DNA of 64,000 nucleotides, taken from NCBI RefSeq assembly GCF_037042905.1, contig NC_087257.1, positions 14,632,001 to 14,696,000 on the forward strand, given 5' to 3'. Shown here piece by piece: positions 21,296 through 63,697 of the stretch. How positions within the stretch are numbered: position 1 is the stretch's first letter; every line of letters begins with the position of its first letter. This stretch comes from Lytechinus pictus (taxonomy: Eukaryota). The translations under genes were made by a program, and so were the position numbers. The notes below the pieces were generated by a model. That model was not told the DNA's origin and searched no databases. It saw only the letters and a list, made by a program, of their open reading frames with translations.

Positions 21296-21703
21296 TACCC
21301 CTTTCATAAACCCAATTATGCGGCTAATAGCAGCATAATTTGGTCGTAAAATCAGAGGAGGACAAGTCAAGAGTTATCCGCATTATTCTGATGCTGCTAT
21401 TATCCGCATAATAGCGGCATCGGGACAAGATTTTGAGTTTATGAACGTATTTCCAAATAATGCGGATAATGCCATGGTGCGGTCACAAGGTCACCCTTTT
21501 CCAACACAACCGCATCGGAGGGGGCGTGTCCAGTTGTCATGACGATTATCCGCCTTTTTCAGGACGGGCTCTCGTACAAATAGGCCTAATGGAGTAATGG
21601 GGATAATTTTCGGAGTTTGTGAACGCAATTTTTATTGAATTATCCGCATTTCTCTTAGGCGGCTAATTGGAGGAAAGGTTTTATTGGGTTTATGAAAGGG
21701 GTA
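21296..21703. mobile_element. MITE with internal TTATCCGC repeats
   Basis: TIRs TACCCCCTTTCATAAACCCAAT / ATTGGGTTTATGAAAGGGGTA. Confidence 0.8.
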
Positions 21704-21891
21704 TTATTTGAGCGGGAATTCTGGGAATGGGCGTGGACGTTGACAGCTGGGAATCCGATTCCGAATTATCTGCAAGTGCAAAGACAAGTTTTAACTTAAA
21801 AAAAAAGTGTCCGACTTCTCTTCTGACAGGGTTAGGTAACCATGCAAGATGAATGAAGTTAAACTTAGAATCTAACGTTAGAGTTACTAAC

Positions 21892-22044
21892 CGCTTTGGC
21901 GATATCTGTGAGAGCTTCATCCTCCGCGGTGTAGGCCCGACTCTTTACCCTCCTCCTCCCCGCCGGACCTCCCGGCGATGGTCCGCTGTGATTCGGCCCG
22001 CCCCCGACGGTACTAACGTCCAATTCCACTGCGTCTACAGACAT
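21892..22044 (-). CDS. LRRFIP2: LRRFIP1/2-like (leucine-rich repeat flightless-interacting protein), first coding exon
   Basis: Hand translation from ATG at 22044 gives MSVDAVELDVSTVGGGPNHSGPSPGGPAGRRRVKSRAYTAEDEALTDIAKA|gttagt (phase 0). This matches the LRRFIP N-terminus GRKR...(S/T)AED(D/E)AL..IA.E. The region is GC/CpG-rich. The LRRFIP1 vs LRRFIP2 label is nominal. Confidence 0.9.
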
Positions 22045-26724: not shown

Positions 26725-29627
26725 CCACTGTGACTGTCGCTTATTGTAGTATAGCGTCATCTGTTGTTATTTTTCAGTACAATCACCCCTGACAGACAAG
26801 ATAGCAAAAATTACAAATTACGCGCGTAAAACATTCCCCATAGACTTGTGTGTTAAAATGGCACTTAAGAAAAATTCATAAAAAATAAATGTGAAATTAG
26901 AGGGTCGAATGTTTACTACCTTTGGATAGGATATATATCTGACATTCCATATCTGACCAGAGAAGGGTATCGTAGCCAGCTCATTTTAAAAATAAATCGC
27001 CATTTATGAAGATAACTATGATGGGATCAAATTCATCAACTGAAACAGTAAAATAGCCCCAATTCTTCCGCCAGTCAAAAAATAGTTCCAAATCATTGAT
27101 ATATCTTCCCAATTTGGGCAAAGGAAGTTCAGTAGTAGGTACACGTACACCATGCGCCGACTTTCTAAATAGACCGACGGCACAAAAATTAGGCGCTTCT
27201 TCCATCTCAGAGTACAATTTGTCATGCTCCCCCTGAAGTAAAACATTTTTGATAGGGTGAATGCCCTTTCAAGTACTTACAAGGGTTGAAAAAAGTATAC
27301 AATTTTCCCATGATTACATGCTTATATTTTTCACCACATACCTATGCACATACATCCCCCAGCAGTGATAAACTGGCTCTTTGGGTGTTTTGTGTACGAG
27401 GCTTTCACGTCATGTATGTAAGTTTTACTTGGCCAAAGATAGTGCGCCCTCTTCTGTTGTTGGCGCAACCACCGATACAAAACTTCGCAGCCGATTATAT
27501 TATGTTAAGAGCCCAAGATTTCCCGGTCATAATGGTTTGAACAGGCAATGTCGTAATGAGGCAAAAATTTTGAGGGGGTCAGTATGGCGCATGTGGTAAA
27601 AAGTTGCTTAATATATGTTCTGGGCGAGCGAGAAAAAAATACACCTAATTTTCATGAGAATCTAACTAAATTTAGCTTTGGAGAATTAGCAAGCTTATGA
27701 TGGACTTCATACACAATGTTATATGTCACTCATCTTTCTTCCCGTTCTTTATTTTCAATCCTCGGCAGCCTTGTCGTGTTATCTTGTCCCTTGTCTTCAT
27801 TTTTTATGTTAGCTTTTGGCTCATTCCATTCTACCATCATTTCCCACTTTTGTGTGCCTTTTCGTCATCTTTATTTTAATTTATTTCCCGTTCTTACAAT
27901 TGCTAACTGATCATTCTAATTTATTAGCTTTTCGGGATGATTTGTTCTTACTCATAATTCATGTTCTTATTTCCTTCCTTTTCCCTTGTTATGTTTCTTT
28001 TTAGTTTTTTCCCACTTTTTCCCTTTCCCTTTCCTTTCCCCATTTCCTCTTTTTTCTTTCCCTTTCTTTCTTCCTCCCCTTGCTCTTTTCCCGTTTTTGG
28101 GGGTTATTTTCCCGGTGATCGAAATCCGCCTGGGGTGCAACTTGCCCCCCCCCCCCCCCGCCTGTTACGCCACTGTTTTTGACGGATATATTGTGTGGGC
28201 AGACCAAATTTAAACGATATTTTCTCATATAGGAGCTTTTGGCCGATGCCCCCCCCCTCCTTATAATAACGACCTGCGTTGAATGAGTAGGCCTAGATTT
28301 TGGCTGGTCATCATCTTTTGACCAGCGACAATGTTGAGCTATATTGGAAGGGGGCATCACACATACCTTGATCTTGTCTTGTCTTGTCTTGCCTTGGGTT
28401 AAGTCGGCTTATGCAGACTTGCTGTACTCCGCCAACTTTATTGATGTGTGTGAAATCACCAAGTAAGCAGGTCACTTGCTAGGTTTTTGATTGAGTTTGG
28501 ATTTGAAAGATATACCATGACACACTCCAAGACGACGATCCTGGAGGGGGGGGGGGTACCCAAACCCTGAGGAATTTTTATATTCAGTCCTTTGGTCCTA
28601 AGCATAACGGGAAATTGTTCCCCATGAATGTTAATAACTTTAATTTGGAGGCTTGACAATTATTTTTGTAGAGTGCCACCTGTGATGAATCTGGTATTTG
28701 GATCTATACCCAGTGCATCAATACCCCCCCCCCCCCGAAAAACTGCACACACACACACAGACACACCCATATGGAAAGCCTGATATAGGTTGCGTTTCCG
28801 AAACCGCTATGAATTCCATAAAAAAATGTGGTTTATATCAAAATGGTGTCTTTCAAACTTGATGAATGCAATGTGCAATTGAATCCTTCAATAGAAAAAG
28901 AAGAGGGGAAGCCAAGTGTTTCCTAATCCGCTTGAATACACAACGGTGTATCAAGGCCTATAGGCCCACCGGATGTCACCCAAAGGGGGCGGGGCAATTA
29001 AAATCCAGAAAGAGCAAATTGTATATATTTTTTTATTCAAATCCAAATAATTAATTGATTTTTATCCCAACAAAAAGATACATCTTTCTCAATTCAGATA
29101 AGTATTTAACCAAAATCACTTACAAAAATTGAAACATATAGCTTTCAAGAAACAAGAAAAAGTAAGGATAAGTAACACCAAGTGTCATTCCAAATCAGCA
29201 TTGACAAGAGTTTTTTTTTCGTATTTTTAATGAAAGAAAAAACAAATTCTCAACAGGTAAACTTCTAAAAAGACAAATAAAAAGAAATTAGAAATCAAAG
29301 AGACCTACTCATGTATCAGTTTTCGTAGACACGTAGACATAAGGGATGAGTCATATTTATGCAAATTAAGGTAAAAGCTATTTAAAATTTATGAAAAAAA
29401 AAGCTACAGAATTTATAGTACGTGACATAAGCTCGCGTGTGACGTCACAAAAAATGAATCATACCTTTGGTGGATTTTCTTGTCAACTTTCATACACTAT
29501 GATTCTTTCACTTTCTGATTTATTATTAGAACCTCAGAATAGTTAAAGGTCAAATTCACGCGGACAAAACAGTTCGGTAGAATTAGAGAGTAATCAAACA
29601 AGCATAACACTGAATGGTGGCATTTAA

Positions 29628-30991: not shown

Positions 30992-31617
30992 CTAGATACC
31001 AGATGTAGATTTTAGAACAGTTTCCGCCAGTGATTCTTCCGCAACATTGAAAGCGACACCGTCATCGTTTGGCGTAACGGACACACTTTCTGTTGTTCCA
31101 TCAGATCGTCCATTGTTCATTTCAGCCGCCGCGTGTTGTGTACTTTTACGTCCGCAAGGAAACAAACTGGCCAGATGGCGCTTCATGTGAGGTTGATTGA
31201 GAACGTAGAGAATTGGATTGAGCGCCGCGTTGAAGAGGACGAGGACATCGGTTAACATGTTTAAGGAAATGTGAAGCACCACGTTACGGTGATAGAAGTC
31301 ACCCTTGAGAACATGTGGCCATATCGCTAAGTAGTAGCCATGCCAATAGCCCCAACTGATGAAGAAAGATAGCGACACTGATCCGATCAGCGCCAAGAAG
31401 CGTGTTTTGCGTGCAATTCTTCGCCGACTGGTTAGGGACAGAGTCGACGCGTTTCGCTTCGTTTCAGCAGCCCCGATGGTTAACCCGAAACACACTATTA
31501 TGATGAGGAAGGGAATGGCAAAGGTAAATATGAACAAGATGATATTGATGCAGTACAATGTTTCCAGAGTGGTGAACAGGTCGATGGGAATAACCGCACA
31601 CGATGACAGCAATCCAA
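30992..31617 (-). CDS. Orphan GPCR exon 3 (TM4 end to TM7, C-terminal tail)
   Basis: Phase-1 acceptor aaacag at 31618. Contains TM5 FAIPFLIIIVCF, TM6 FFISWGY and TM7 NAALNPILY, ending at a TAG stop. Total protein ~377 aa. Confidence 0.9.
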
Positions 31618-32066
31618 CTGTTTCATTTTCACCAAAGCACCGAGAAAAGGAAGGAGAAAGGGGGAAAAGAAACGAAAGAGATAGTTAATCCCATTAAAGT
31701 ATATACACCCAGTTCTTAATTATTAGGTAATTTAATTTGATCTTTACTGTGTATTTTTTGTTAATGTCCTATCAACATTTTGGGGGAAAAAGATCTCTCA
31801 TTTGCATGTTTAGATTTAAAAAAATTGTCATTTTGCGCAAATATAGTTATGGAAGGCGACATGTGTATTAAAAATACCGCCATATTCTTGATCTGAGTTA
31901 GGCTTTGCTACATACGCCTTCCATAGATAATTGAATGATTGCCGATGATGTGCGCTCTCAGAGCAAAATGAAGAAATTGAAAGAAGTTCTCTTTGAATAT
32001 CCTGGTTCTTAATTCCTAGATATCATTCAATATTTTTGTGTCTTTAATACCAAATGCTTGACTTAC

Positions 32067-32202
32067 CAGCCCAGACAATGCCACAGCCGATGAGGGCGTT
32101 CTTTACCGTTCTCCTGTTATGCAGAGCCTGGGGATGTGCAACGATGGCGTATCTATCCACTGCCAGTGCCGTTATCATGAAACAATTAATCACCATAGTA
32201 CT
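32067..32202 (-). CDS. Orphan GPCR exon 2 (TM3 DRY, TM4)
   Basis: ttttaacag|STMVINCFMITALAVDRYAIVAHPQALHNRRTVKNALIGCGIVWA+G|gtaagt, 136 nt, phase 0 to 1. Confidence 0.9.
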
Positions 32203-32334
32203 CTGTTAAAAGATTAGAGCAAAATAGCATTAACAATGGGGAAGATGCCATTACTTGCCAACATTAGGGCAACGTTATTGACGGTCTACCACATTTTGTC
32301 AGACGAAGTTGGATCCGATTGTTGGCACCCCATT

Positions 32335-33548
32335 GACATCTGATAGACCGGCAATTATGGGAGGAACGGGTCGGTTTCATGACAAACAGGTCCTGACAAT
32401 ATATTTACTATACCCAAACAATAATTGAACAGAGTCTAGAATGGAAAACAAGCACATACTTAAACTTCGTATAGATAGACTTTGAAAAAGTGTTTGATAG
32501 TATCCACAGAAAGACACTATGGAAAATATTAAGCAGTTATGAAATACCATCAAAATATGTGAACATAATCATGAACAAGGTTTTCACGTGCACAGTCAGA
32601 CATGATGGGGAGCATTCAGATTGGTTAAAAATAACTTCAGAAGTAAGGTAGGGGTGTATTCTACCACATTTTCTTTTCTTAACCTGGGTCATGCGGAGAT
32701 CTACTGGAACCAATGCAGGAATACAATGGACATTGACGACTTTCCTAGAAGATTTAGGCTTTGCCGATGACATCTGTCTGACATCACATACTAGAAACCA
32801 AATACAAGGAAAGACACATAGAGCAGGGTTTGAAGTCAGCCAGGTTTGACCCAAAATAAATGAGAAGACAAAACTGATGATGATAAATTGGAAATGCAAA
32901 CAATCTGTTAAAGTAAATGAGAAAAACATCGAACAGGTTGATGGTTTTGTTATTTGGGTAACACTCTAAACAACAGTGGAGACATCATGGTGGAATTCAA
33001 AGTAAGGATTGGGAAAGCAGCAAGTGCATTAAACAATTTGAACAATATATGGAAAGCAAGACAGATATCAAGAACTACAAACATAAAACTGTGCCGAAGT
33101 AATGTGCGGACGGTACTACTCTATGGAGCAGAAACATGGAAGGTCAACAGAACAATAGAGTGAAAGCTAGGGGACTTTGAGGGGAGGGCGCAGAATTTGA
33201 AATATAAGATGGCCACAAATACTAATAAACAAGGAAGTACAAGAAAAAAAATAGGATTCAATGACATCAACATAGAAATAACTCGAGAAAGGTGGAGATG
33301 GTCGAGACACATAATGCGCATGGACAGTACCAGGCATACAATACATTACTATGCTGGACACCACAAGGGCAAAGAAGGAGGGGCAGACCAAACGGGACAT
33401 GACGGAGGACCATAGAACAAGAAATGAAACAAATCAAACAAACTTTGAATGGGCTGGCATACTCGCCCAGAACAGAAGAAACTGGCGTTCGGCTGTAGAT
33501 CTAGGCCTTGTGTACACTACCAAGTGAGAAGAGGATAAAGTAAGTAAG
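32335..33548 (+). mobile_element. 5'-truncated, degenerate RTE-clade LINE (RT and 3' end) in GPCR intron 1, antisense to the gene
   Basis: Frame-broken RT motifs FEKVFDSIHRKTLWKIL, LEDLGFADDICL and VRTVLLYGAETW, ending in a (TAAG)n tail at 33537-33548. Confidence 0.85.
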
Positions 33549-33670
33549 ATATCTGATTCTAAATCAATCTTTTATACAACACTTCTTTTAGATAAACATA
33601 CATTTTCTTAAATTCAAATTGTGAAAAATGGAGTATCTTTACTGAGAGAATGAGATTGATGTAAGCCTAC

Positions 33671-34042
33671 CGATTCACATGCTTCGATCAGTTTCCTAAT
33701 ATTCGAGTCCGTCACGACGTGGAACAATTGCTTGTGAAGATATATCCCGTAAATGACTGCATCGGTCAGTCCCCAGACAAGAAGAAAAATAAAATTTGAA
33801 ACAGAGAGGCTGACGATGTACACGTTGTAGACAGTATTCCGTAACTTCTTGCTTCGCAGGATGGCATAGAGAACAAACCCGTTGGCGACCAGGCCGACGA
33901 CCAAGATGATGGTGACGAGTGAAAAGCCTACCCGGAATGTCGTCAGGAGTTGACTGGCCAATTCGACCACATCTGACCAGTCGTCGTAGTCGAAACCTGC
34001 CGAAGATATGTCGCCAGTCACTGTGTCAGTGTCAGACGCCAT
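33671..34042 (-). CDS. Rhodopsin-class (family A) orphan GPCR, coding exon 1 (N-terminus, TM1-TM2)
   Basis: MASDTD...VVGLVANGFVLYAILRSKKLRNTVYNVYIVSLSVSNFIFLL...RKLIEACES|gtaggc (phase 0). TM1 N1.50 and ICL1 LR...N motifs are present. An upstream acceptor ttcttcag near 34074 suggests a 5' UTR exon further upstream. Confidence 0.88.
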
Positions 34043-38056: not shown

Positions 38057-38237
38057 GCTCCCCCCCCCCGGAAAAAAATCATATTACTGTAAGATTCACC
38101 GAAAACAATATAACTGAACTTGAAATCACCCAATTTGAATATTGTGATGTTTACAAGCATAAGTGTGTTCTTAGTGCATATAAATATATAAACAATTATC
38201 TAGAAAGTCAATATATAAATATTCGTGGTGATGATTA

Positions 38238-38393
<156 letters not shown>

Positions 38394-39139
38394 TCAGATT
38401 AATGTCGATTACATAGTGGAATCATATGTTTTCGCTGTGGAAAGTTGTCTTTTTTTTTCTTTGCGTCTGAAACCAAAATAAGATTATTTGCTTGGATTCC
38501 ACGTCTTAAACCCATAAAGAATGTCTAATGCGCAATATATCCTTCGTAGCAGAGACCTCTTTGTGTGACTAGCCTTGCATCTGGTCAGTAATTTAATATA
38601 TGTTTACATCAATAAGATTTTCACCTTTTCGTTCCTTCTCTTTTTTCTTTCCTGTATACGCATATATAATTAAGTCGACAATTTACATTTTTTTCATTTC
38701 CAAGGGGATCCACACTTTACAAGCATTGCTTTTAGTAGACCCCCCCTCATTTCCGTTTATGCTCAATTTTATACTGTTTTTTATTTACAAGGTAAGAATG
38801 TTCATCTGTAAAATTGTACCCGATTTATATTACTTTGTATTACGTTTGAATGGAAAAGAAATAAAGAACTGAATTGAATTGAATGAAGGGGTGTCAGCGT
38901 ATGGATTCGTAGGAATATGTTATTCAAGTTTATCCCTTCTCTCGGCATGTGTAAGAGAATTTTCTCTAAGTTTCATTTTTTTAAGTTAGTCCTTCAATAA
39001 AGACAAAATGAGATGAAACAAGAACAACAATCGATATTCAATCAAAAATTATATTTCCAACCATTTACTACAGATATCCAATGTGTATAACCCTACTGGA
39101 AAGAACGCAGTGTACCACAGTGTGAAAATATCTTCACAC

Positions 39140-39756
39140 CAGGGGCGGCGATCCATGGGGATCTTTTTGAAGAACTGAAAGTGTCCTTTTTATGCAAGTA
39201 AAATGCTCCCTCACGAACGTGTACTGTGCCCCTTTCATCGGAGGAGGACCCGTTAGTGTAAGCAAGTGCCCCCTTATTGCCTTCTTGTAAGTGCCCTTTC
39301 TCGAATCAGTGCCCCATTTTACCCAAGAAAAGTGCCCCTCACGAACGTGTACTGTGCCCCTTTCACCTGAGGAGGACCCGTTTTAGGTGTTACCAAGTGC
39401 CCATTCTCGTATAAGTGCCAATATTTCCAAAAAATACCCCCTCTCGAACGTGTTCTGTGCCCCTTTCTCCTGAGAAGGGCCCGTTTTATGTGTGAGCAAG
39501 TGCCTTCTTGTAAGTGCCATTTCTCGAATTAGTGCCCCACGCGAACATGTTCTGTGCCCCTTTCACCTGAGAAGGACCCTTTTAGTTGTTAACGAGTGCC
39601 CCTTTTAAACAAGAAAACAATATTCTAATTTTTATTTCTTACTACTAGTTATAACTGATGAAGGAAATAAACTTGTGAGAATAATCCTAGTATATGAGTC
39701 ATGTGAGTGGGGTATATAAGAAGTGACGTTCAGATGGGGGGGGGCTCCCCCCCCCC

Positions 39757-39788
<32 letters not shown>

Positions 39789-40091
39789 AAACCAAGACAA
39801 AAAAGAGAAAAGGGAAGAAAAGGAAAGAGAGACTGGGTGAATTTTAATATGTCGAAATCTATCACAAAATTGGATTTTCGTTATAAAATGTCAAAAAAAT
39901 TCTCGCTCGCTTTGCTCGCAGCTTATTAATTTTACGTCATACGACATATTAAGCCCCCTCAAAAATTTTGGCTCATTACACCACTGGAGATACATTATTT
40001 TTTCTTTGTTTTAAGAAAGTGCCCTTTTCGAAGGAAAAGGTGCCCTTTTTCCCTGTGCCCCCCCCCCACTTTCAACTTCGCTCCACCCCTG
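39140..40091. mobile_element. Non-autonomous element with four ~100-125-bp internal repeats
   Basis: Ends CAGGGGCGG...CCACCCCTG. Unit CGAACGTGTACTGTGCCCCTTTCACCTGAGGAGGACCC at ~39214, 39342, 39445 and 39542. Confidence 0.6.
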
Positions 40092-40244
40092 CTTCACACT
40101 GTTAAATTCGAACACTTGAACAGAGTGAATACTATTTTCACTCGATCAAGTCCACACTACGAACGCACTGTGTGACGCTGTGTTCTATCCAGCATGGTTA
40201 AAAGCCAACGACTAATTTTCAGGCTGATGTTTAGGTATATTTAC

Positions 40245-40426
40245 ACTGGGCGTTGTGGCGTGCGCCTGTAATCCAAGCTGTGGGGAAGTTACAAATTGAT
40301 GCAGAGGTTCGAGGTTCGAGCCCTGGTCACGTCTTTCGGATGGTGACGTTAAAGGTCGGTCCCAGACGTAAATAATCATATCTGATTGATACACGTCTGA
40401 CAAAACTCAAATACACACACACACAC
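40245..40426 (+). mobile_element. SINE-like element with a 7SL (Alu-domain)-like head and CA-repeat tail
   Basis: Head ACTGGGCGTTGTGGCGTGCGCCTGTAATCCAAGCT resembles the 7SL 5' end. B-box GGTTCGAGCCC at ~40313, a short core, then an (AC)n tail. Confidence 0.6.
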
Positions 40427-40656
40427 ATTACACATCAAAAGACGTTCCATTTATGAAAATGATAGTGTTTTACAAACTTTTTGTCTTCAGGATATTACCC
40501 CCCCCCCCCCCGTGGACGTCTATTCATTATCTATATTTATGATTGAGGGTTGTTGATACCGATTATCCTTGATTTATAGAGATAGGCCTACTGGACAACT
40601 TCTTTCGAAATAAATATTTTATAACTTTCCATAAATCTGACCGCAGATTAGATCAA

Positions 40657-41247
40657 AGGGATGCTCCAAGCTGAAAATATTTATATTTCAATAAATAGAG
40701 TAAAATTCACAGAGCAAAGTGCTGAAAATTTGATCGAAATTGGAAAATAAATAACAAAGTTAATGAAATTTAAAGATTTGCATTATACTGGTAAAACAGT
40801 TCAAGGCATGTCTTCATGAATATTTATCATGTGGGCTGATGATGTCATATCCCCACATGTTCTTTGTATTATATGAAATGGGGTTTATTCAAAAAAAATT
40901 CTACCAAGAATTAAAACAATTGGATTGATAACTGATTATGTGCATTAGTTATTGATTGCTTCAACTTATTTCATCATAATGGAGACACATCATTTACACG
41001 TGTATGAAAAAAATGAAACAATTCATGTTATAACATAAGAAAAATGGAATGTAAGGATGTGACATCATCAACCCACCTAATGAATATTCATGACAACGTG
41101 CATAACTTTTTTCACCAAATATTGCTAAACTTTGAAATTCAATAACTTCGTTATTTGTTATCAGATTTTGATGAAATTTTCAGCATTTTACTCTGTGAAT
41201 TTTACTCTTTTTATTCAAATATGAATGTTTTCAGCCCGGAGCATCCT
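40657..41247. mobile_element. Kolobok-like foldback MITE, same family, in SULT-A intron 6
   Basis: AGGGATGCTCCAAGCTGAAAA...TTTTCAGCCCGGAGCATCCT|TTAA. Confidence 0.8.
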
Positions 41248-41712
41248 TTAAGTGTAAGGATTTTCTGACTATTAATACCGTTTATTCCTTTTTTCAACAG
41301 ATGCGTCGAGAAGTATCGTTTTCAGGCAAAAATAAGTCATCAAAAATTGAATTCAAGTAGATAGAATAAAGTATTATAACATTTTGTATCACTCTAATTT
41401 GATGCAGCCAACGATAGCGCCGATTGAAATTGAAGTAATTTTAGCGTGTATAATAATAAGAGCAGAATGACGCATTTCGGGATATCCAAAGGTGACGGAA
41501 TCGATGAGTTCAGGGCGCAAGATGAAGCTATACTGATATTTGCCAGCACATGTATCTATTTCATTTCAATGTGATAAAATCCATGCATTAGGCCTATACC
41601 AACAAACATGCATCAATTCTTTAAAGATATTCTAATTATATACAATGATTATACTACTACACCCTACTACTAAGCCCTACCATATACTACTACTAATACT
41701 ACTACTACTTCT

Positions 41713-41843
41713 NNNNNNNNNNNNNNNNNNNNNNNNNNNNNNNNNNNNNNNNNNNNNNNNNNNNNNNNNNNNNNNNNNNNNNNNNNNNNNNNNNNNNNNN
41801 NNNNNNNNNNNNNNNNNNNNNNNNNNNNNNNNNNNNNNNNNNN
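41713..41843. other. Assembly gap (N run)
   Basis: Run of Ns, flanked by (CTA)n and a local duplication. Confidence 1.
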
Positions 41844-43795: not shown

Positions 43796-43890
43796 CTGTT
43801 TCATGTCTTCATACTTGAGAAAGAGAACGTTGGGATGATTCCTGAACTTCCACCAGTAAAGAGTATGCTCGAACCAAGAACCGTAAAAAG
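43796..43890 (-). CDS. SULT-A exon 5
   Basis: AFYGSWFEHTLYWWKFRNHPNVLFLKYEDMKQ|gtatgt; 95 nt. Confidence 0.92.
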
Positions 43891-44579
43891 CTGTAAAAGT
43901 TTGGATCACGGAGATGCTGAGAATCAAGGCAAAATGAATGAGAAATGGCAATTCTGAATCCATTTTGTTGTGACTTTGCAAAGCCCCACCTACTAACACA
44001 ACCATGATAGTCATTGAATCATGTTTATTGCATCCCCAATCGTGATTGATGCATTCCTCTTTTAATAGTTTTTATGGATAATACTAACAATCCAAAGCAT
44101 TCATAAATGTAGAGCAAAGGGCTTTTTTTTTTATTTGATGGCAGATGATCAATATTTTCGCCTGGTTTGATTTCCCCCATCTCTCATTGTGGCGCAAGAC
44201 ATTATTTTACACTTGATAGTGACATTATGATGAGAGAAGGAAACTTAATATTTGTTGGTGTACTGACTTCTATAAACTTACTGAATATCATTTTATTGGT
44301 TTTATCCTTTATTTTTATTATTCTAGCCGTATTTGTAAATTAATATTGCTTTCATAAAATTTGCATCGACCAGTTATCCTTATAGTGATCCCATGTTCCT
44401 GCTGATCTATATTAATCATTAATCCACAAACAGGGAATGCTTATGAAAATACAAAACATAGGATAATATACAATTGCATTTTTTTTGTTACGAGGTCAAT
44501 AAACCTTTCCCATTGGTATTCATGGTATACTAAGCCCTCTGGTCCCAAATTATTGATAGTGGCAAGGTGGAAGAGTTAC

Positions 44580-44847
44580 CTCTATCTGCGATGAACTCCT
44601 CAAAGAATTCATGCCACGTATACGTCGGAAGTGGCTTAACCAGTTGACAATAATGATATCCAGAAACAGCCGTATCCTTTGGGTTCCTAGCCATGTACAG
44701 CACCTTCGCTAGAGGATTATCTTTGAGTCCGTCAGGGAGCCATCTTGGGACCACGTGTGTTTTTAGTATCCGAGGTGTATCGGTTGGCATAGCGTCTGCC
44801 ATTTCCGCACCTGTTGGTCCAGACATTACCTCTTCCTTGTCTTTGTA
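44580..44847 (-). CDS. SULT-A exon 4 (catalytic His, 3'-PB motif)
   Basis: ...PRILKTH...KVLYMARNPKDTAVSGYHY...WHEFFEEFIADR+G|gtaac; 268 nt. Confidence 0.92.
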
Positions 44848-45011
44848 CTAAAATATATCATTTATGTAAAAAAAAAAAATGTATAAAAACTTAAAATGTA
44901 GACAATCCATGAGTTTATTTTTAACATTTTTTTAACAAAAATTCATGAGCCTTGTCTTGTGATCGATCATGGCATGTGACAGAGGCAATTCTGTTTACTT
45001 TTCATACTCAC

Positions 45012-45139
45012 CGTCATCTTCACCGGTAAAGTGCAAACTTCCAAGAAAGGAACCATCGTAATGATATGCTTCCCTTCGAAGAATGAGAGATCCCCTTCAA
45101 GCTGTACCAACATTACATTCTGCTGGAGCCACGTTGTTC
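45012..45139 (-). CDS. SULT-A exon 3
   Basis: GTTWLQQNVMLVQLEGDLSFFEGKHIITMVPFLEVCTLPVKMT|gtgagt. Confidence 0.9.
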
Positions 45140-45536
45140 CTGTTCACATGAAAATAAAACATTGCATCCGATTTGATTGGTTGATACATTGACATGATTG
45201 ATACATGTTGATGGACCGAATAAATCAAACTAATATCGATGACTTACCCATTATTAGGTTTACTAATAACTGGAACACAATCATGAGATCGATATTCTCT
45301 CCACAATTTTCTTCTATTTTGGACAGTACTTAAATTTTCCTTTCGGGTCAGTATATAAATAAAAAAATTGAGCTTGTACTTCGCGTTCACATTATGTTTA
45401 TTAAGATACACAGCTTGTTCAATTACATATGCCGATTCTGAGTCTGTTCTCTATATAAAAACGTGTAAAAATTTTTAGTTATGCGACAGGATTCTTCACT
45501 CCCTTCAGCCATATGGTCACCTTTATCATGTTTATG

Positions 45537-46219
45537 CAGGGGCGGATCCAGCCTTCGTCAATAGGGGAGGGGGGGGGCGTGGCGGGGCGGGGCGGAATTG
45601 CTTTCAGCCACATTTCCCACAATCGGCCGCTCGAAGTTGATTTTTTGTTTGTTTGAAGGGACAATCCTGATAGTCACTTCTGAGCTTTATTCTTATAAAT
45701 CAACATAAATATATAATAATCTCATAAGCTCTATTTGAACAGTGCGAGCGCGAAGCGCGAGCTATTTTGTTTTTCATTTCATGTATTTTGTCCTAAAATT
45801 TAAACATTCTAGGCAATGTTTGTAATCCTAAACGAGATGTGTATCCAACTAAATAATTACTGAAATTTGTAAATCAAACAAAATATGAAAGTTCGACTTC
45901 CGAGCTGAAATGTGTTTTGTATATTGACTTCAATTTTGATATATTAAGCTCCATATTGAGCAAGATATGTAAATCACCTAAAAGGAAATGTGAGCGCAAT
46001 GCTCGAGCAAAAATTTTGTATAATGACATGAAAGATTTTTTTCCAAGTTTTCCCTCATCTTATTTTATTCACTCGTTTTCCTCCTCTTATGTTTCCCCTC
46101 AATCTTTTATCTCCTCTCTTTTCCCTTCTTTTTAATGTTTTCTTTCTTTCCCGCTTTTTTTCTTTTTTTTTGCTCCGGCAATAGAGGGGGCGGGCCCCTC
46201 GGCCCCCCGGATCCGCCTA
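45537..46219. mobile_element. Non-autonomous element of the same GCGCGAAGCGC family in SULT-A intron 2
   Basis: Ends CAGGGGCGGATCC...GGATCCGCCTATG; body aligns by eye with 36757-37930. Confidence 0.7.
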
Positions 46220-46712
46220 TGATTTTTGTGAAAGGATTCAACAATCCCTATCAGGGCCATGGTCGCCATTATGCGACAGGAATCTATACACTCCCTTCAG
46301 GCCCATGTGTCATCGGTGTCCTATCCTCCTAACATTGGACGCTACGCTGTGTAAAGATGTACATCAGACAGTGATTTCCAGTAAAAATTCATTTTCTTCA
46401 ATGATTACTGTAAGAATAAGCATGATTCAAAAATCATTTTATCTCTTGGTACGGGACTATAAAGTCTTATTTAGGGGCACACCTTTGATATGCCGATAAG
46501 TATAGGCGCCATCTGTACGTAAATCGTGGCCCTCAGAATTACCAACTGCGACACACCTCATGATGATTTATTATTATTATTTCTTGCAACGAGACAAATA
46601 AAGCCCCAATAGAAACTCCCAAATGCGTCCTACTGATTGGTCGAAATCAGTATTTGGGTCGATGGGAAGAAAATGTACCTTTAGCCTCTAATAGAACTTG
46701 AGATTTACTAAC

Positions 46713-46901
46713 CTACTTTGGGATAGCTGATGACAAACACGTCGTCCGGACGAACTTTGAATCGTTTCGTCTGTTCGATGCCTTTCTTTGGGATGTAGTA
46801 TGCCAGGACAACATTCTCGTATTCGTGGCAGTGTTTGGCTGCATGCGCCGGGGACTTGGCGAGGAGGGCCGACATCTCCCCGGTCCAACACTCAACAGTA
46901 T
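46713..46901 (-). CDS. SULT-A exon 2
   Basis: DTVECWTGEMSALL...KRFKVRPDDVFVISYPKV+G, the first half of the 5'-PSB loop; 189 nt, phase 1-1. Confidence 0.9.
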   Translation of the reverse strand: MLLSVGPGRCRPSSPSPRRMQPNTATNTRMLSWHTTSQRKASNRRNDSKFVRTTCLSSAIPK

Positions 46902-48053
46902 CTACAAAAAAAAAATAGATTAAATGCGTTATTGCAATTAATATCAGATGGCTGTAAATATTGATTTACAATGTGGCATATAGGCTTGAATATGCACTTT
47001 TGAAAAGTGTTTATTACATGACTATTATTCTAGGATATGCCTTAGTATTGTGGGCTTCTGGGGTTTTTTACTCATACATGTCATAAGAAAGGTCTTGTGA
47101 CATAGAAATAGTATTTTCTACAATAGAGTTATGTGACTTGTTTAGTATACGCGTTATGACAAATCCCTGTAGTGCTGAGAGTGCGACAAAAGGCTGTCTG
47201 CTTGGATTCTCGAAAACAAAATTACTTGCATTGTACTTTGGACTGCCGCACCTTGACATGTCATGCATGGCTGATATTCATCGATGCGAGAAAATAATAT
47301 CATTCATATTTTCGGCTGGTAGGGTTATTGTGGCTGAAAACGAAAAAAAAAAACTGTGCAAGGGTGAATAAGCATTTTCCACAAACAAGCGCCTGTCATG
47401 ATATTTTTATGTGAGGATGGATCAACTAAACGACCTCAAATTCACAAGGGAACTAATTTCATAAATATACATATATTTCACCTCGTAATTTTGTGTGACT
47501 TCCAATATCATCCAGGTTGCTAGATTTAATATTGAAATTGAAAATAGCACGTATCCGATTGGTAGAATAGCAATGTGCTGTGAGTTTTTGCCATAATTAT
47601 AGATAGGCCTACAGAGATACAACCGGAGATACAATCTCATACGACCGGAGATGCAATCTCAAAGCCATTTATAATGCATGCAATGTTTGTCATATAATGG
47701 TTACAGGTAATATTATTCTATCATGCTCTGTTTGTTTCAGGGTTGTATTACCACAGCAGTAGCACGTAGAAATTTATTTGATAATGGCCATGGGCTGCAA
47801 CCCCAGGGTGGGGGGTTAGCTTGAATTTTGTAGAGTAGCTAGCCTATGGGAGTTGCCCCCTGCCCCCCCCACCCCCATGAAGACTGGCCACGAATATGCC
47901 GCGCATAGAACTAACTGGTCGCCTAGCTCGAACGTGATTTTCTCTAGTTCAAGATCGAAGTATACATAACCTTTGCACCGACAACAAACATACTTTACAA
48001 GCTCACTACGGTCATATTTATCATGTTTAGTCAACAGGAATCATAATGTTTAC

Positions 48054-51888: not shown

Positions 51889-52932
51889 TTAATTCATTCT
51901 CATTTTCTTTTCATTACCCAAGCATGAACTTGTAACACAGCCCATTGAATAATCTCCGTTGGGCGGTGCATATAAAAGCATGCAAGTGCAAATAACATAT
52001 GTAGGCCTATATCATGCACAACATGAATAATAAAATGATAAATGATGTTCATATCTTCAAACTTCAAATACATGTTGGAAAAAATGCACAATTACCCACC
52101 ATAAGCTAAAAACAAGTTACAAAAATGCACCTTTCGTTCCTGTTTGCACCGGAAAGGCTGTAAGATGTTATTTTGTCAACTATGCTTATTTTAGGATGCA
52201 TGATATTTTGCAATAAAAAAGAGCAGATCTACTATACATCTTATCTAGAAACTACTATATACTCTGCACCTTAAACATTTACTGAATTGGTGCAGCAATA
52301 AAAGTGCCAAAAACTTTTAGGGTGCAACGTACCGCACATACAGTGTCAAGCTAAAAATAGCATATTAGTTCAGCATACTTGCTATCAAAGAATTTAATTT
52401 ATACACCAAAATAATGCAGGAATTGGTAGTGCAATGTCTTCATGAAATCATGAAGATACTGCTTGCCTTCTGTGCGTGATTGCCATTACCAATCAAAGTA
52501 TCGGAAGAGATTCCAAGATCATTCGCATCTGTCGACCGAAAGGGTACACACACATTAAGAATATTTTCTTATAAGAAATATTTGAATCGTCATCAGTGAT
52601 GGTTGTAATCATCTAGAATTTCCATTTGGGCGATTTTAATATTGATGATGAAGATTGGTATGGTGTTGAAAAAATTAGCACAGCCAAAACTACACCATTC
52701 TTAAAATCAAGTTGATGCTCAGTGTCCAGAGCTATCTATGGTTCAAAATGTGTAATATTTATAAACCCGACTTCGGTGTTGGGGTTTGAATCAGCACCCC
52801 AGTTCACGTTTTGAAATTGAACGAAAACATAAACGCCGAATTTTATTTCATCCGATGTTGCGTTTAAATTTGCGATGTTTAACCTTGTGTAACCTAATGT
52901 AATCATTATGAAATGCAAGATATTGACGATGG

Positions 52933-53082
<150 letters not shown>

Positions 53083-53249
53083 TTATGAACTAGGCCTACT
53101 ACAAACTGCTTGAGAGCAAATTAGTCGTTGGATCCATCACTAACAAAACTTTTCCTTGGATTTCATTATTCAGAACTGAAGTGGCTACCACTGATAATGA
53201 CTTTACTATTATCACCATTAGCATTATTTGTTATCATAATAATGTTTTG

Positions 53250-55769: not shown

Positions 55770-58560
55770 TCGCATAATGAAGACCATGGGCTTTATGGGA
55801 GCAGGAAGTCATACTCCCAATTCCCTGAAGGGAGTGTAAAATTCTGTCGCATACTGGCGACCATGGGTTTGAAGGGAGTGTAGAATCATGTCGCATAATG
55901 GCGACCGTGGGTTTGAAGGGACTGTAGAATTCTGTCGCATAATGGCGACCATGGGTTTGAAGGGAGTGTAGAATCCTGTCGCATAATGGAGACCATGGGT
56001 TTGAAGGGAGTGTAGAATCCTGTCGCATAATGGCGACCATGGGTTTGAAGGGAGTGTAGAATCCTGTCGCATAATGAAGACCATGGGTTTGAAGGGAGTG
56101 TAGAATTCTGTCGTTTAATGGCGACTATGGGTTTGAAGGGAGTGTAGAATCCTGTTGCATAATGGCGACTATGGGTTTGAAGGGAGTGTAGAATCCTGTC
56201 GCATAATGGCGACTATGGGTTTGAAGGGAGTGTAGAATCCTGTCGCATAATGGCGACTATGGGTTTGAAGGGAGTGTAGAATTCTGTCGCATAATGGCGA
56301 CCATGGGTTTGAAGGGAGTGTAGAATTCTGTCGCATAATGGCGACCATGGGTTTGAAGGGAGTGTAGAATCCTGTCGCATAATGGCGACTATGGATTTGA
56401 AGGGAGTGTAGAATTCTGTCGCATAATGGCGACCATGGGTTTGAAGGGAGTGTAGAATCCTGTCGCATAATGGCGACCATGGGTTTGAAGGGAGTGTAGA
56501 ATCCTGTCGCATAATGGCGACCATGGGTTTGAAGGGAGTGTAGAATCCTGTCGCATAATGGCGACTATGGGTTTGAAGGGAGTGTAGAATTCTGTCGCAT
56601 AATGGCGACCATGGGTTTGAAGGGAGTGTAGAATCATGTCGCATAATGGCGACCGTGGGTTTGAAGGGACTGTAGAATTCTGTCGCATAATGGCGACCAT
56701 GGGTTTGAAGGGAGTGTAGAATCCTGTCGCATAATGGAGACCATGGGTTTGAAGGGAGTGTAGAATCCTGTCGCATAATGGCGACCATGGGTTTGAAGGG
56801 AGTGTAGAATCCTGTCGCATAATGAAGACCATGGGTTTGAAGGGAGTGTAGAATTCTGTCGTTTAATGGCGACTATGGGTTTGAAGGGAGTGTAGAATCC
56901 TGTTGCATAATGGCGACTATGGGTTTGAAGGGAGTGTAGAATCCTGTCGCATAATGGCGACTATGGGTTTGAAGGGAGTGTAGAATCCTGTCGCATAATG
57001 GCGACTATGGGTTTGAAGGGAGTGTAGAATTCTGTCGCATAATGGCGACCATGGGTTTGAAGGGAGTGTAGAATTCTGTCGCATAATGGCGACCATGGGT
57101 TTGAAGGGAGTGTAGAATCCTGTCGCATAATGGCGACTATGGATTTGAAGGGAGTGTAGAATTCTGTCGCATAATGGCGACCATGGGTTTGAAGGGAGTG
57201 TAGAATCCTGTCGCATAATGGCGACCATGGGTTTGAAGGGAGTGTAGAATCCTGTCGCATAATGGCGACCATGGGTTTGAAGGGAATGTAGAATCCTGTC
57301 GCACTATGAAGACCATGGGTTTGAAGGGAGTGTATAGAATCCTGCCGCATAATAAAGACCATGGGTTTGAAGGGAGTGTAGAATCCTGTCGCATAATGGC
57401 GACCATGGGTTTGAAGGGAGTGTAGAATCCTGCCGCATAAAGGCGACCATGGGTTTGAAGGGAGTGTATAGAATCCTGCCGTATAATGGCGACCGTGGGT
57501 TTGAAGGGAGTGTAGAATCCTGTCGCATAATGGCGATCATGGGTTTGAAGGGAGTGTAGAATTCTGTTGCATAATGAAGACCATGGGTTTGAAGGGAGTG
57601 TATAGAATCCTGCCGCATAATGAAGACCATGGGTTTGAAGGGAGTGTAGAATCCTGTCGCATAATGGCGACCATGGGTTTGAAGGGAGTGTAGAACCCAG
57701 TCGCATAATGGCGACCATGGGTTTGAAGGGAGAGTAGAATTTTGTCGTATAATGGCGACTATGGGTTTGAAAGGAGTGTAGAATCCTGTCGCATAATGGC
57801 GACCGTGGGTTTGAAGGGAGTGTATAGAATCCTGTCGCATAATGAAGACCTATGTTTGAAGGGAGTGTAGAATCCAGTCGCATAATTGCGACCATAGGTT
57901 TGAAGGGAGTGTAGAATCCTGTCGCATAATGGCGACTATGGGTTTGAAGGGAGTGTAGAATCCTGTCGCATAATGGCGACCATGGGTTTGAAGGAAGTGT
58001 AGAATCCTGCCGCATAATGGCGACCATGGGTTTGAAGGGAGTGTAGAATCCTGTCGTATAATGGCGACCATGGGTTTGAAGGGAGTGTAGAATTCTGTCG
58101 TTTAATGGCGACTATGGGTTTGAAGGGAGTGTAGAATCCTGTTGCATAATGGCGACTATGGGTTTGAAGGGAGTGTAGAATCCTGTCGCATAATGGCGAC
58201 TATGGGTTTGAAGGGAGTGTAGAATCCTGTCGCATAATGGCGACTATGGGTTTGAAGGGAGTGTAGAATTCTGTCGCATAATGGCGATCATGGGCTTGAA
58301 GGGAGTGTAGAATCCTGTCGCATAATGGCGACCATGGGTTTGAAGGGAGTGTAGAATCCTGCCGCATAATGGCGATCATGGGTTTGAAGGGAGTGTATAG
58401 AATCCTGCCGCATAATGGCGATCATGGGTTTGGAGGGAGTGTAGAATCCTGCCGCATAATGACGACCATGGGTTTGAAGGGAGTGTAGAATCCTGTCGCA
58501 TAATGGCGATCATGGGTTTGAAGGGAGTGTAGAATCATATCGCATTAAGGCCACCATGGG
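55770..58560. repeat. 44-bp tandem satellite, about 62 units, in SULT-B intron 2
   Basis: Unit GTCGCATAATGGCGACCATGGGTTTGAAGGGAGTGTAGAATCCT, repeated head to tail with no unique spacers; some 46-bp variants. Confidence 0.97.
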
Positions 58561-58829: not shown

Positions 58830-61493
58830 CTGGGATAGAATACAATATGTATTGTGTTAATGTAATAAACATGGAGAGCATATAGTGAATCAACACCTAA
58901 GTTTTATCTTTTAAGTGCGGTACAGCTAGCTTAGGTGTTGGCAAACACACTTTACAAAATTTCAAATTTAGGGGCTTGTTAATGTTAATGGACAATGTAC
59001 TGTATATATATATATATATTTGTGGTTTATCATGAAGTTATGGTAGGACTTCTACGACTTGTTATCCTTTAAAAACTGAGTTAATTTGTTAGGTTGTTTT
59101 CGCTCATTTCATCATGTTTAATATAGGCCAATGTAAATCATCGGTTCATGATAAGGACAAACGAGATATGGTTAGGTCTATTCATTTTTACTTTTCTCTT
59201 TCAATGTTTTTCTTGACAATTGTTTTCTTGATTATGTTATCATGACTATAATAGTACAATCTGCCACACTGTTATGTTGAGATATTATATGTATTATATA
59301 GGCCTACGCAATATAACTACACCGTCATGTTATAGATACTTATATACTCATTTTGGCGATTCTTTATAATTCGCACTGATCGAATGCATAGTACCCGCAG
59401 TACATGAACTTGAGGTTGGTAACGGAACCATATAACTCGATGGAAGTTAAATGCTATATTTTTTTTATTGAGGTTTACCTTCCACTATGCTGGTAGGCAG
59501 AGGTGGCGACGGTGTATTCCGATAGGGGAAGGTTTTGAATTTCTTGTGGAGGTATGAGAGAGTGAATCCAACTTTCCGTTAGGGAATAGAGAAAATGAAT
59601 GTTTGCTTGCAATGTTATTTGATCTATCGCTACATTCATATTTTTACAGTCCAACCAGCTCTAGAGAAAACCTGTATAGAAAGACTATATACCTCTCTAT
59701 AAAGATGATAATTTGGTTTTTCCTTTTATCAGTGACATAATGAGCATGATTATGATGATGATGATGATGGTGGTGGTGAAAGTGATAGCGTATAACAAAA
59801 ATAAAGCTACGGGACTACAGGAGCGAAGCGAACGAGTGAAAATAATTACTTTTTTCCTTTCCTATTTTTTCTTTTGTTTCTCCCTTTTTGACTTGCAATT
59901 TTCTGTTAATATTTTTTTGGGGGGCGAGCCCTTTTCGTATTGTTACACTTGTTTACACCCTATGGTAGCAGATTTTCAAGTTCTCAGGGTGCAGAACAAT
60001 TTGTATTCCTAAAAGGTATAACACTAGACCCTTTTAAGGGTGGAAATGTAGATTGCTGCGCCCCTATAAGTGAACGAAGTTTCTTGGGATGTACCAAACA
60101 TCCCAAAAGGCGGTTTTATTGTGACATTTGAAGTTTGCGGAATAAGACCCATTTTTCTTAGCGTGTACCTGATATACCAAGGCCCATCCAGAGCCATCGC
60201 TTAATTAGGTCGCCTAAAAACTTTACTCGTGTCTCTCTTTTGTAGCAATTTACGCTATATTTATATTTCAACCCCCCCCCTCAAGAAATGGTGGGTAAAC
60301 GTGAGCGGGAGGGCAGAATAAAAAACGAAATAAAGAGAAGACAATGGGAAGCATAAAACATAATTAAAGTTTATAATAATAATAATAAAAATAACAATAT
60401 ACAAAAAGCTATAAAGCGCTTTATACGAAAGTTTCAAAGCGCTAAGAAAGAAGGGGGGAATACAATATATATCAGTAAAAGAACAACAAAGAAACTGAAA
60501 GTGAAAACACCGTTACGAAAAATAAATCTATCTTACGAGTCAAGAACTATAACAAGAAGCTAACGGCGTGAAAACCTAGAATGGGCGCCGCCATCAGCTC
60601 CCACCCTCACCCCTCCCTACTTTGAGATGTTGAAAGGGGCCAACTTGTAGCTCTGCCCAGGAGCACTTTTTCTAGATACGCCAAGGGTAGTAAGTTATCA
60701 TTTTAAGTAACAATGGTGATGGAGTTGCGTTATCATCACAGGTAGACATAATAATCATGATAATGTTTGCTATATCTGTACTTTAACAACATTCAATATG
60801 CAATCATTGACTTTTCCAAGGCCCTTGGAAGCGGGGGTGAGCTGCACCCCCCAAGATTTTCTTTGGGGATGCTGCGTGTATTATTCTTCATATAGGCAGC
60901 ACCCTCTGGAATTATATGTGTGACAAATTGGAGAAATGTAACAAAAAGGGCCAACATTTTTTTGCTTGTCAAATTTCTCGCGACCAAAATGACCTTCATT
61001 TTTTTTAGGGGATTGATCATTTTTTTTTCCTTGTCAAATTTACATCAGCATCCCCCGTAAAAAACATCGCTCAGTTTGGAGCGTATGATGTTTGCGTGAC
61101 TGTAGCATTATTTAACTTGTTAAACACCAAGGTTTTCCAGAGGGGGGGGGGACATTTTGCAGAGAAAAATTGGATAAGTAATAAAATAAAGGTTTAAAAA
61201 AAATACATAAATTTTTACCAACTTTAAATTTGAAAAGCAAAAAATAACCCAGTCCTCACTTGTGCGTGGATGACATATTCACAATACAAATATTTCCTAT
61301 GACTCTCAAAAGGGGGGCATGGGCCGGATGTGCCCCCCCCCCTGGATCCGCCACTTTTAAACACAATTGCCTGGAGTTCAAGATCAAAGCATACTTGCAC
61401 TTTGCCATGTTTTCTCCGACGAGAAATATACAATACCGTAATGTTTACATGCTATATGCGGCGTATTAAGGCAACACTTATCAAAATGTTTAC

Positions 61494-61509
61494 CTTTCCT
61501 TTCAGCCAT
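61494..61509 (-). CDS. Sulfotransferase paralog SULT-B exon 1 (MAERK)
   Basis: ATG GCT GAA AGG AAA G|gtaaac, homologous to 48054-48069. Confidence 0.7.
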
Positions 61510-63697
61510 ATCTCTGAATAAGCAGCATACAGTGTGCACTCTGGTAGCAGTCCGCACTGAATGCCACTGATTCAAATGCAGCTATAAGGTTTGGGATCTT
61601 TCGAGCCTTCTTAGACTTTATCCAATCACAAAATGACAGAACACGAATGGAAATGTGATCCATATCCGTTTGATAATATTATAAATATTCACCAAAGTGA
61701 CTATCTCATTTTCATTTTCTCCGAGTGCCAGCATCTTTGATAAACCCATGGACCCTATACGATTTCCCAGATAGGACTCGATTGGATTATGAATTTTACA
61801 TATCATTATAATGAGAAAATTCTTTTTCCATGAAATATGGATCTGGCTCTATTTGATCTTTCCAAGTCGAGGGGAGATCGCCTAAACCATCACCGACATG
61901 AAAAAGAAAGAAATATTCACAATTTTTCTTAGCGTCTGGAAGCTAACATGATTCTTTGTTTAAACTTCCATATTTGATAAATTTGACCATAATAAAGAAA
62001 ATGATGAACGATTAACAAGCATCATTGCATACAAACAACTATAAAGACTACTGTGGGGACTGTAAAAAAAAAGGGGAAAAATATTTCTTCCTTCAGGGAC
62101 CGATAACTAGGAGGACATGGAAACGCTTTCATGGCTTTTGACCAAAGCTTGCACGCGAAATCTTCTGGTTTTGTCAAATCTCTAGGTTTGAGATTGGAAC
62201 TATATCTTCCCAGAAGTTAGTTCTAGTCCTTATTTAACGTACCTAAGATAGAAAATGCACTCGTTATTCATGCATGCGAATATGCGATCTTTATACACAC
62301 AGGAACATGAAAATTTATAATCTTTAATTTCATCTAGATCACGGGCGCACAGATCTGTTTGGGGGGCCATGCACCCCATACAATTTTCATGACAAAAAAA
62401 GAGAGAGAGAGAGAGAAATAAAGGCAGGAAAGGAAGGGAAAAGTTTTGAAATTTGAATTGATTTAATGAATCATTATGTCAGTCTAACAGAAAATTAGAG
62501 TTTGGTATGAAAAGAGTCATTTTCATGCTTGCTTTGCTCGCTCTCAGATCATTAAAAAGTGTTTGCGTTCCCATACGCCATTTTGACCCCCTCAATTTTT
62601 TTTTTTTGGGGGGGGGCTCGTTACGCTACTGATATTCTAGGTTGGGTTGGCATCCCCCCCCCCCCGCTTTCTTTTGTCTGATAGACTATAGGCCTATCAT
62701 TATTGTCATCATTGCTTTTATACGATGCTTTTTCATGTATTGAATGGACTTTGACTCATGTTTATCAACGTTTGTTTGTGCTAGGTTTTGTGAGTGCTCT
62801 TATCAATTGCCACTTTGGCCAGCGCACGTAGTTTAGTTTGCTTAACTTCCACTTTAAAAATCAGAGGGTGAGAAGATGTTTAAGACATGGGGGTCTGTCT
62901 CATAAAAAGGCGTTTGTAAGTTACGAATGACTTTACGAAGGGATTGATCAGGTTTTCTGAAGCTAAAACAGTTTTTCTTTAACTTCAATCCCCGTCAGCT
63001 AAAGCTGAATTTTAAAGATTGAAATTTTGATATAAAGTTGATTGGGCTTATTTGCCAAATGAAATCGGGCTAGGCCTATATAGTAAGTTCGGTCCCACTT
63101 TGTTGATACACATTTTTAGTCATTCCTGTCATTTAAAGGGCCCCTCTGTAAAACAGCGTTGATAATTATGTTATCAACGCTGAGTAGGGCAATCCCTCCG
63201 TCTTTTTAATGATCATTTCTTTGTAATTGTAAATATAATATCGTTGTTATTTTTCTTAATTGACGGAAAATAAATACAATACAATACAATGAGCATGTTT
63301 AGCACAAACATACATGGGTCGTTCGTAAGATAATCCGTAACAACTTAAATTCCGTGTGCACATTTGTTAGGCCATTTCAGCTATGTTTTCGGTGTGACGT
63401 CATTCATGGGGTGCAACCACTGAACTGGAAATCGTTTTTCCAGTTCAGTGGGTGCAACCATGAGAGGTGGAAACCTTAGGTCTATTTCTTTAAGGCCACT
63501 CGATCGTTGTCGACGGGATCCATAGTCTAAATGTGTGAACGTGCATGGGCATCACATTCTTTGATCTCAAACCAGTAATACAGAAGGTAGTATTAGGCAT
63601 AATATCGGAAAGTCACTGTTTTTGTCATATATTGCCCAACTTAGCAGGAGTAATTGGGGGTTTCGACAACTGGCGAGAGAAGTGTTGCCTTCCAAAA

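Follow-up and report, generated by a model that had tools for sequence, protein, structure and literature searches.

Invertebrate genomes carry mosaic gene-body methylation, and CpG depletion is the usual proxy for methylation in the germline. The transposon Minos is reported to leave a footprint of six bases, namely TA plus four terminal bases (Arca et al. 1997). Tc1/mariner elements excise with two- or three-base 3' overhangs and leave characteristic scars, which for Sleeping Beauty (SB) and Frog Prince have the form TAC(A/T)GTA (PMC3878927), and excision increases more than 20-fold when the donor is CpG-methylated for SB, Frog Prince and Minos, which are of the inverted repeat/direct repeat (IR/DR) type, but not for Tc1, Himar1 or Hsmar1 (Jursch et al. 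2013, PMC3680223). Here we describe a 64,000-nucleotide stretch of the genome of the sea urchin Lytechinus pictus (assembly GCF_037042905.1, contig NC_087257.1, positions 14,632,001 to 14,696,000, forward strand), hereafter called the window, which is enriched in two palindromic eight-letter words with TA at both ends: TAGGCCTA, an old and sparse insertion at TA, and TACATGTA, which is restricted to CpG-poor DNA.

Distribution of the two words and CpG content

An exact scan found 11 copies of TAGGCCTA in the window, all of the form TA-GGCC-TA and spread over 21581-63071, where dinucleotide shuffles predict 0.46 (no more than 4 in any of 100) and the expectation for positions 19501-64000 under an order-3 Markov model is 0.28. 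These are the positions given in a first-pass annotation of the same DNA, one of them shifted by a base (52002, not 52003), and its observation that the first 19 kb has no copy is borne out, as positions 1-21580 are devoid of TAGGCCTA, an outcome with a probability of 0.018 by length alone (0.695^11). The flanks of the sites are mutually unrelated in nine of 11 cases, the exceptions being 21581, inside a miniature inverted-repeat transposable element (MITE), and 41589, in a tandem array. One-mismatch variants of TAGGCCTA are also enriched in the right part of the window (20 seen versus 7.6 expected) and are mostly transitions, but in the left part they are not in excess (4 versus 2.05 expected). 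Among the 16 possible words made of a palindrome between two TA dinucleotides, a clear excess over the order-3 Markov expectation was observed for only three, TACATGTA, TACCGGTA and TAGGCCTA, with left/right counts of 52/0, 3/0 and 0/11, respectively.

All 52 copies of TACATGTA lie between 317 and 19177 and none is found in the right 44.5 kb, where one-mismatch variants of the word do not exceed background (32 seen, 29.7 expected). This field corresponds to the CpG-poor gene body of LRRFIP and contains, besides the three copies of TACCGGTA, 24 copies of the SB-type seven-letter form TAC(A/T)GTA (6.4 expected); the right part has another 3 copies of this form (4.2 expected). CpG density is 13.6 per kb on the left versus 28.9 per kb on the right, and the per-kb CpG observed/expected ratio ranges from 0.17 to 0.87 on the left and lies mostly between 0.7 and 1.1 on the right, the boundary being a step from about 0.4 to about 0.8-0.9 at 19500-20000, with the last TACATGTA at 19170. 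The first-pass annotation had placed a switch between the words at the CpG-rich LRRFIP promoter zone (about 19.5-22.5 kb), and the turnover does coincide with this step at 19.5-20 kb. It had also described TAGGCCTA as lying outside the gene body, a description that we have to correct, since at least three sites (40583, 41589 and 42416) are intronic, within the annotated span of the CpG-rich sulfotransferase gene SULT-A. The word split tracks CpG depletion, and not the distinction between gene and intergenic DNA.

The confinement of TACATGTA to CpG-poor DNA is robust, being replicated in Strongylocentrotus purpuratus and L. variegatus. At the syntenic locus of S. purpuratus, the initial 5 kb of the LRRFIP body, where CpG observed/expected is 0.2-0.6, holds 14 copies and the following 17.6 kb a single one, and these arose by events independent of those in Lytechinus. 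When the camarodont loci are divided by local CpG observed/expected, low-CpG DNA has 62 copies of TACATGTA in 33 kb and high-CpG DNA 17 in 138 kb, and the bias persists when the window is left out (p = 9e-10). An origin of TACATGTA by CpG decay of an ancestral TACGCGTA was rejected because the sister products of such decay (TATGCATA and others) are not enriched, and an apparent target-site preference (A-T-G before the word) proved to be largely explained by chained scars and is unusable.

Related words were noted at several of these loci. The three copies of TACCGGTA, at 9609, 14909 and 15349 (0.1 expected), are confined to the CpG-poor part; as they are intact despite containing CpG, they are probably recent scars that belong to a third family. 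An S. purpuratus locus (L004) has TAGATCTA and similar TAG..CTA words in chains at 1223-1340 and 2200-2260, and (TACATG)n chains occur at 9487-9557 of the Patiria miniata locus (L009). The CpG-poor body of the STT3 gene in Diadema setosum (L008, 24000-31951; observed/expected 0.27-0.41) has two TACATGTA in 8 kb, and, judging from this one Diadema gene, dense TACATGTA fields may be a feature of camarodont urchins. A mild excess of TACATGTA was also seen at the oyster locus (L011, Ostrea edulis; 6 versus 0.9 expected) and at the hemichordate locus (8 versus 3.1), and such a low-level excess may be common among marine invertebrates.

Insertion at TA and age of TAGGCCTA

The L. variegatus locus is present twice on one chromosome (CM031027.1 at 24.56 and 18.21 Mb, here L001 and L006), due either to an uncollapsed haplotype or to a recent segmental duplication, and its G protein-coupled receptor (GPCR)-LRRFIP region is 95-98% identical between the copies over about 14 kb. 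Over 13.4 kb the two copies show 2.0% mismatches and only seven six-base indels, and two of the seven are scars. At L001rc 5811, one copy has TAGGCCTA where the other is shorter by exactly six bases, with CA in place of the expected TA, and at L001rc 309 a clean TA in one copy stands against TACATGTA in the other. The TA + 4 bp + TA insertion pattern that the first-pass annotation had suggested is thereby borne out. A further case was found in L. pictus, where TAGGCCTA at 12486 of an independent locus (L002) lies inside a repeat of which two other copies have TTA or TAA and seven fewer bases (+7). For the related words, TACATGTA is a +6 insertion in repeat copies at 3124 and 4155, and TAGATCTA, a fourth palindromic type, is a clean +6 in L. 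variegatus (L001 9725) relative to TA in L. pictus (window 33642). These comparisons support TAGGCCTA as a recurrent six-letter insertion at TA, though less cleanly than for TACATGTA, the polarity of the indel in the TAGGCCTA comparisons not being fixed by an outgroup.

One pair put forward earlier does not contribute to this conclusion. Within the MITE, the letters quoted by the first-pass annotation around a TA and around TAGGCCTA are indeed present, but the two contexts are not homologous and fall in different registers in the best internal alignment of 21293-21706, so that the supposed before/after pair was rejected as a coincidence of 3+3 letters. Comparisons of SULT-A with SULT-B at 42416, and of paralogs at 53091, involve sequences too diverged to be informative.

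The age of TAGGCCTA is revealed by the L. variegatus ortholog, which was reached via the GPCR open reading frame (ORF) and aligns to window positions 18884-45284 with 82-87% identity. Alignable TAGGCCTA sites are common to the two species and partly decayed. The intergenic site at 28288-28295 is old and corresponds to TACAGGCCTA in L. variegatus. At 42416-42423, another old site, which is intronic in SULT-A and some 25 bp away from an exon, L. variegatus retains AGGCCTA amid indels. The reverse is found at 33662-33669, in a GPCR intron, where L. pictus has the decayed form TAAGCCTA and both L. variegatus copies have TAGGCCTA. A compound decayed pair, AAGGCCTA + TAGGCCCA, occupies 28953-28968; its first word is shared by L. 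variegatus, which lacks the second, the window having 8-9 additional bases. At every alignable site at least one of the two Lytechinus species lacks the intact word, which fits neutral decay and speaks against a conserved binding site.

The enrichment extends well beyond Lytechinus. In S. purpuratus, TAGGCCTA was seen 6 times in L004 and 5 times in L005 (about 0.2 expected in each), which are not independent samples, as these paralogous copies, 88-98% identical, have five sites in common. The two loci lie on AAGJ06000019.1 at 3.13 and 2.64 Mb; their GPCR copies are alike for 15 kb and only L005 continues into LRRFIP. Five copies were found in Diadema setosum (61 kb; 0.24 expected) and four in Patiria miniata (30 kb; 0.25 expected), with unique flanks in both, and one each at the hemichordate (0.17 expected) and oyster (0.26 expected) loci. 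TAGGCCTA is the product of a slow, long-running and echinoderm-wide process, and most of the copies in the window predate the split between L. pictus and L. variegatus.

Possible transposon origin and rival explanations

The explanation that we favour, and consider probable with some reserve, is that TAGGCCTA represents the excision scar of a TA-targeting cut-and-paste transposon of the Tc1/mariner type, old and sparse, and that TACATGTA derives from a faster process limited to methylated gene bodies. Six bases, GGCC and a second TA, would be inserted at a TA dinucleotide: an element targeting TA, with inverted ends that start with GG and end with CC, would leave behind on excision the duplicated TA together with two bases from each end, giving a palindrome, or, by an alternative route, a four-base palindromic end would give cohesive overhangs. 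In this scheme TACATGTA (ends CA..TG), TACCGGTA and TAGATCTA would be sister scars of other families, and an excess of three of the sixteen possible words is expected if each word had one element family. The process behind TAGGCCTA would be slow, long-lived and still making indels in Lytechinus, acting in CpG-rich DNA, intergenic or intronic, whereas TACATGTA would arise at about ten times that rate, and solely in gene bodies that are CpG-depleted and presumably methylated in the germline. This confinement could be explained if the donor were an IR/DR Tc1-like element whose excision is boosted by CpG methylation.

Several observations weigh against this origin. Scans of the window and of about 300 kb of fetched loci gave no TA-flanked GG..CC element, and Pfam scans of 20 ORFs in the window gave no transposase. 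The echinoderm-wide enrichment requires a family that is either very old or repeatedly reintroduced, and the methylation state of the domains is deduced from CpG depletion only. Moreover, the TAGGCCTA indels are less clean than those of TACATGTA, the empty site in L. variegatus having C for T and the other TAGGCCTA-type comparisons being +5, +7 or +8-9 rather than +6.

The first-pass annotation had proposed a search for TA-duplicating elements with GG...CC termini, and what our searches offer is a single candidate in S. purpuratus, a 137-bp unit at 7240-7378 of L004 (also in L005) with 18-nt arms that are 94% complementary and TAGGCCTA at both ends. It is possible that this is a miniature element with GGCC ends, of which it is the one case. 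The remaining hits of the scans for TA-flanked GG, GA, CA and CC ends were only nested parts of larger inverted repeats or scar pairs. A L. variegatus MITE (L001rc 1551-1991, TA/GA..TC/TA) was considered as donor of TAGATCTA and rejected, its real (CAG) ends being CAGTAGAGG.. with a 5-bp duplication. This 441-bp MITE, at L001rc 1548-1994 with a second copy at L006rc 20240-20690, has ends CAGTAGAGGCGCACGG.. and 5-bp target duplications (CACAC, TAAGT). An empty site for it is found near window position 20480, the element being present in one L. variegatus copy of the locus and missing from the other and from L. pictus, and it was mobile recently, because the insertion differs between these sequences.

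A different reading, advanced by the first-pass annotation, is that two scar classes partition the genome, a GG..CC family in unmethylated open chromatin and a CA..TG family in methylated gene bodies, so that the two words jointly record germline chromatin state. We regard this as doubtful. The split in the window is complete, with none of the 11 TAGGCCTA and all 52 TACATGTA in the left field, the syntenic locus of S. purpuratus has no TAGGCCTA in its 5-kb TACATGTA field and five outside, and the pooled density of TAGGCCTA is about four times lower inside fields. However, after removal of duplicated stretches, TAGGCCTA occurs once in 29.7 kb of TACATGTA fields versus 20 times in 126 kb outside, where 3.9 would be expected inside (one-sided binomial p about 0.07), and when the window is left out there is no depletion (1 in 10.2 kb of field versus 9 in 82 kb outside). 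By local CpG observed/expected there is likewise no deficit (a density per kb of 0.21 in low-CpG and of 0.14 in high-CpG DNA), and at L. variegatus L006rc 23291 a TAGGCCTA is flanked by TACATGTA scars, a counter-example to exclusion. To say that TAGGCCTA replaces TACATGTA is also misleading, because the two classes are unlike in age and rate, TAGGCCTA being about ten times sparser, older and common to L. variegatus, and the replacement is not like for like. Of the proposed partition, the confinement of TACATGTA to CpG-depleted DNA stands, in replicated loci and species, whereas the exclusion of TAGGCCTA from TACATGTA fields is not established, and a chromatin-state record holds at most for TACATGTA. 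The two-domain contrast of the window is produced almost entirely by this word, and the apparent two-colour map is mostly one-colour.

The scars could also stem from a host process, in which a domesticated transposase, a TA-specific nuclease or a repair pathway adds fixed palindromic tetranucleotides at a broken TA. The empty donor search, the similar density of TAGGCCTA across echinoderm classes and the purine-TA...TA-pyrimidine bias of the flanks would all be in line with it, but palindromy together with a duplicated TA is the exact product of inverted transposon ends, SB-type seven-letter scars accompany TACATGTA, and we know of no repair pathway that adds a fixed GGCC or CATG, which makes such a process unlikely in our view. 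No more probable is a combined version, in which the TACATGTA fields would be a fossil record of DNA methylated in the germline during the latest few per cent of divergence, independently in every urchin lineage, and TAGGCCTA a donor-less, echinoderm-wide insertion at purine-TA-pyrimidine by a domesticated transposase or nuclease. It is far less likely still that TAGGCCTA is a functional palindromic binding site under selection near genes: AGGCCTA does persist at several orthologous places despite 13-18% divergence, but the pairing of TACAGGCCTA, AAGGCCTA and TAAGCCTA with TAGGCCTA fits neutral decay, the word comes and goes as an indel between near-identical copies, and its placement with respect to the four genes follows no regular pattern. 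We give equally little credence to passive carriage in repeats or to a compositional excess. Passive carriage could account for site 21581 in its lineage-specific MITE, for site 41589, whose tandem array also holds two decayed copies, and for one L. variegatus TAGGCCTA in a lineage-specific insertion, but nine of the 11 flanks in the window have no other match across the motif, and shuffles and Markov models agree in expecting fewer than 0.5 copies.

If the words are indeed excision scars of transposons, echinoderm genomes would hold a countable and datable record of cut-and-paste traffic with almost no resident elements left. TACATGTA would then indicate that transposon traffic or excision is gated by germline methylation, making methylation-enhanced excision, a cell-culture observation, testable in natural genomes, and would constitute a sizeable source of indel mutation inside housekeeping genes. 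The value of TAGGCCTA would be more modest, as a second, older and slower scar class that goes back to the ancestor of starfish and urchins or has been renewed since.

Features of the window and comparison with known systems

The left part of the window is occupied by the LRRFIP gene body on the minus strand, the 5' end of which is equivalent to about 22.0 kb according to the L. variegatus annotation; in that of L. pictus, no LRRFIP gene is given to the right of 20992. The CpG-rich domain contains a rhodopsin-type GPCR gene (30992-34042, minus strand) and SULT-A (38238-46875, minus strand), with an annotated span from 38238 to beyond 44042 and exon ORFs up to 46875, as well as a second sulfotransferase further right, a reverse-transcriptase fragment and a 44-bp satellite (55826-58560; 62 copies, 92% identity, strong GC skew). 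Further paralogs of a sulfotransferase last exon occur at 38205-38362, which is the 3' end of SULT-A in the L. pictus annotation, and at 52924-53057, and the sole match to a 98-aa sulfotransferase ORF was a 727-bp contig.

The L. pictus record GCA_037042905.1 CM073238.1 is 100% identical to the window over two blocks, 20992-41712 and 41844-44042, which are separated by exactly 131 positions; being the same record as the window, it was excluded from later comparisons. The N run at 41713-41843 is thus an equal-length mask inside a tandem array of about 126-bp units with (TAC)n, its flanks being collinear and its length kept.

The remaining TAGGCCTA sites are found in varied surroundings. The one at 21581-21588 lies inside the 414-bp MITE (21293-21706), which has perfect 24-nt terminal inverted repeats and no second copy within the window, and which is missing from L. 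variegatus, whose alignment to the window is interrupted between 20680 and 21797. The site at 40583-40590, inside the SULT-A span, belongs to a 2-kb stretch missing in L. variegatus. That at 41589-41596 is in a diverged copy of the tandemly repeated unit of about 126 bp, whose relatives at 41871 and 41997 have TAAGCCTA. The site at 47604-47611 lies upstream of the SULT-A coding exons, some 0.7 kb from the first of them, and further sites are located at 52002-52009, at 53091-53098, adjoining the sulfotransferase last-exon paralog, and at 62689-62696 and 63071-63078. The site at 59299-59306, together with TAGGCCAA at 59124, bounds a weak 183-bp inverted repeat with 78% complementary arms that could be due to chance.

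In the literature we found no paper describing TAGGCCTA or TACATGTA as a genomic scar. What is new here is that each of the two words has a polymorphic indel pair, that the pattern is replicated in the orthologous S. purpuratus locus, and that TAGGCCTA is old and spread across echinoderms; complementary exclusion of the two words is not demonstrated.

Compared with the footprints of Tc1/mariner elements, the words of the window are alike in having TA duplicated on both sides of a few bases that would be terminal bases of a transposon, with a palindrome as inverted ends would give, and the SB-type seven-letter form is itself enriched beside TACATGTA. They differ in that the GGCC centre of TAGGCCTA has no match among the characterised families checked, and in that the scars are those of a natural genome, reaching 2.7 per kb for TACATGTA with no donor element found in the loci scanned, rather than those of an engineered donor site. 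The likeness to Minos resides in the net insertion of six bases at TA, where palindromic terminal tetranucleotides (GGCC, CATG) would give cohesive overhangs and one uniform scar; the ends of Minos, in contrast, are not palindromic, and the stagger in the present case could be of four bases or two. Methylation-enhanced excision, which was observed on plasmids in human cells, leaves TAGGCCTA unexplained, but would pile up scars in methylated DNA as is seen for TACATGTA. Finally, with CpG depletion taken as the measure of methylation, the window resembles the mosaic pattern of invertebrates, with the CpG-poor body of the housekeeping-type LRRFIP gene standing beside CpG-rich tissue-specific genes (GPCR and sulfotransferases), and the boundary between them falling slightly inside the gene.

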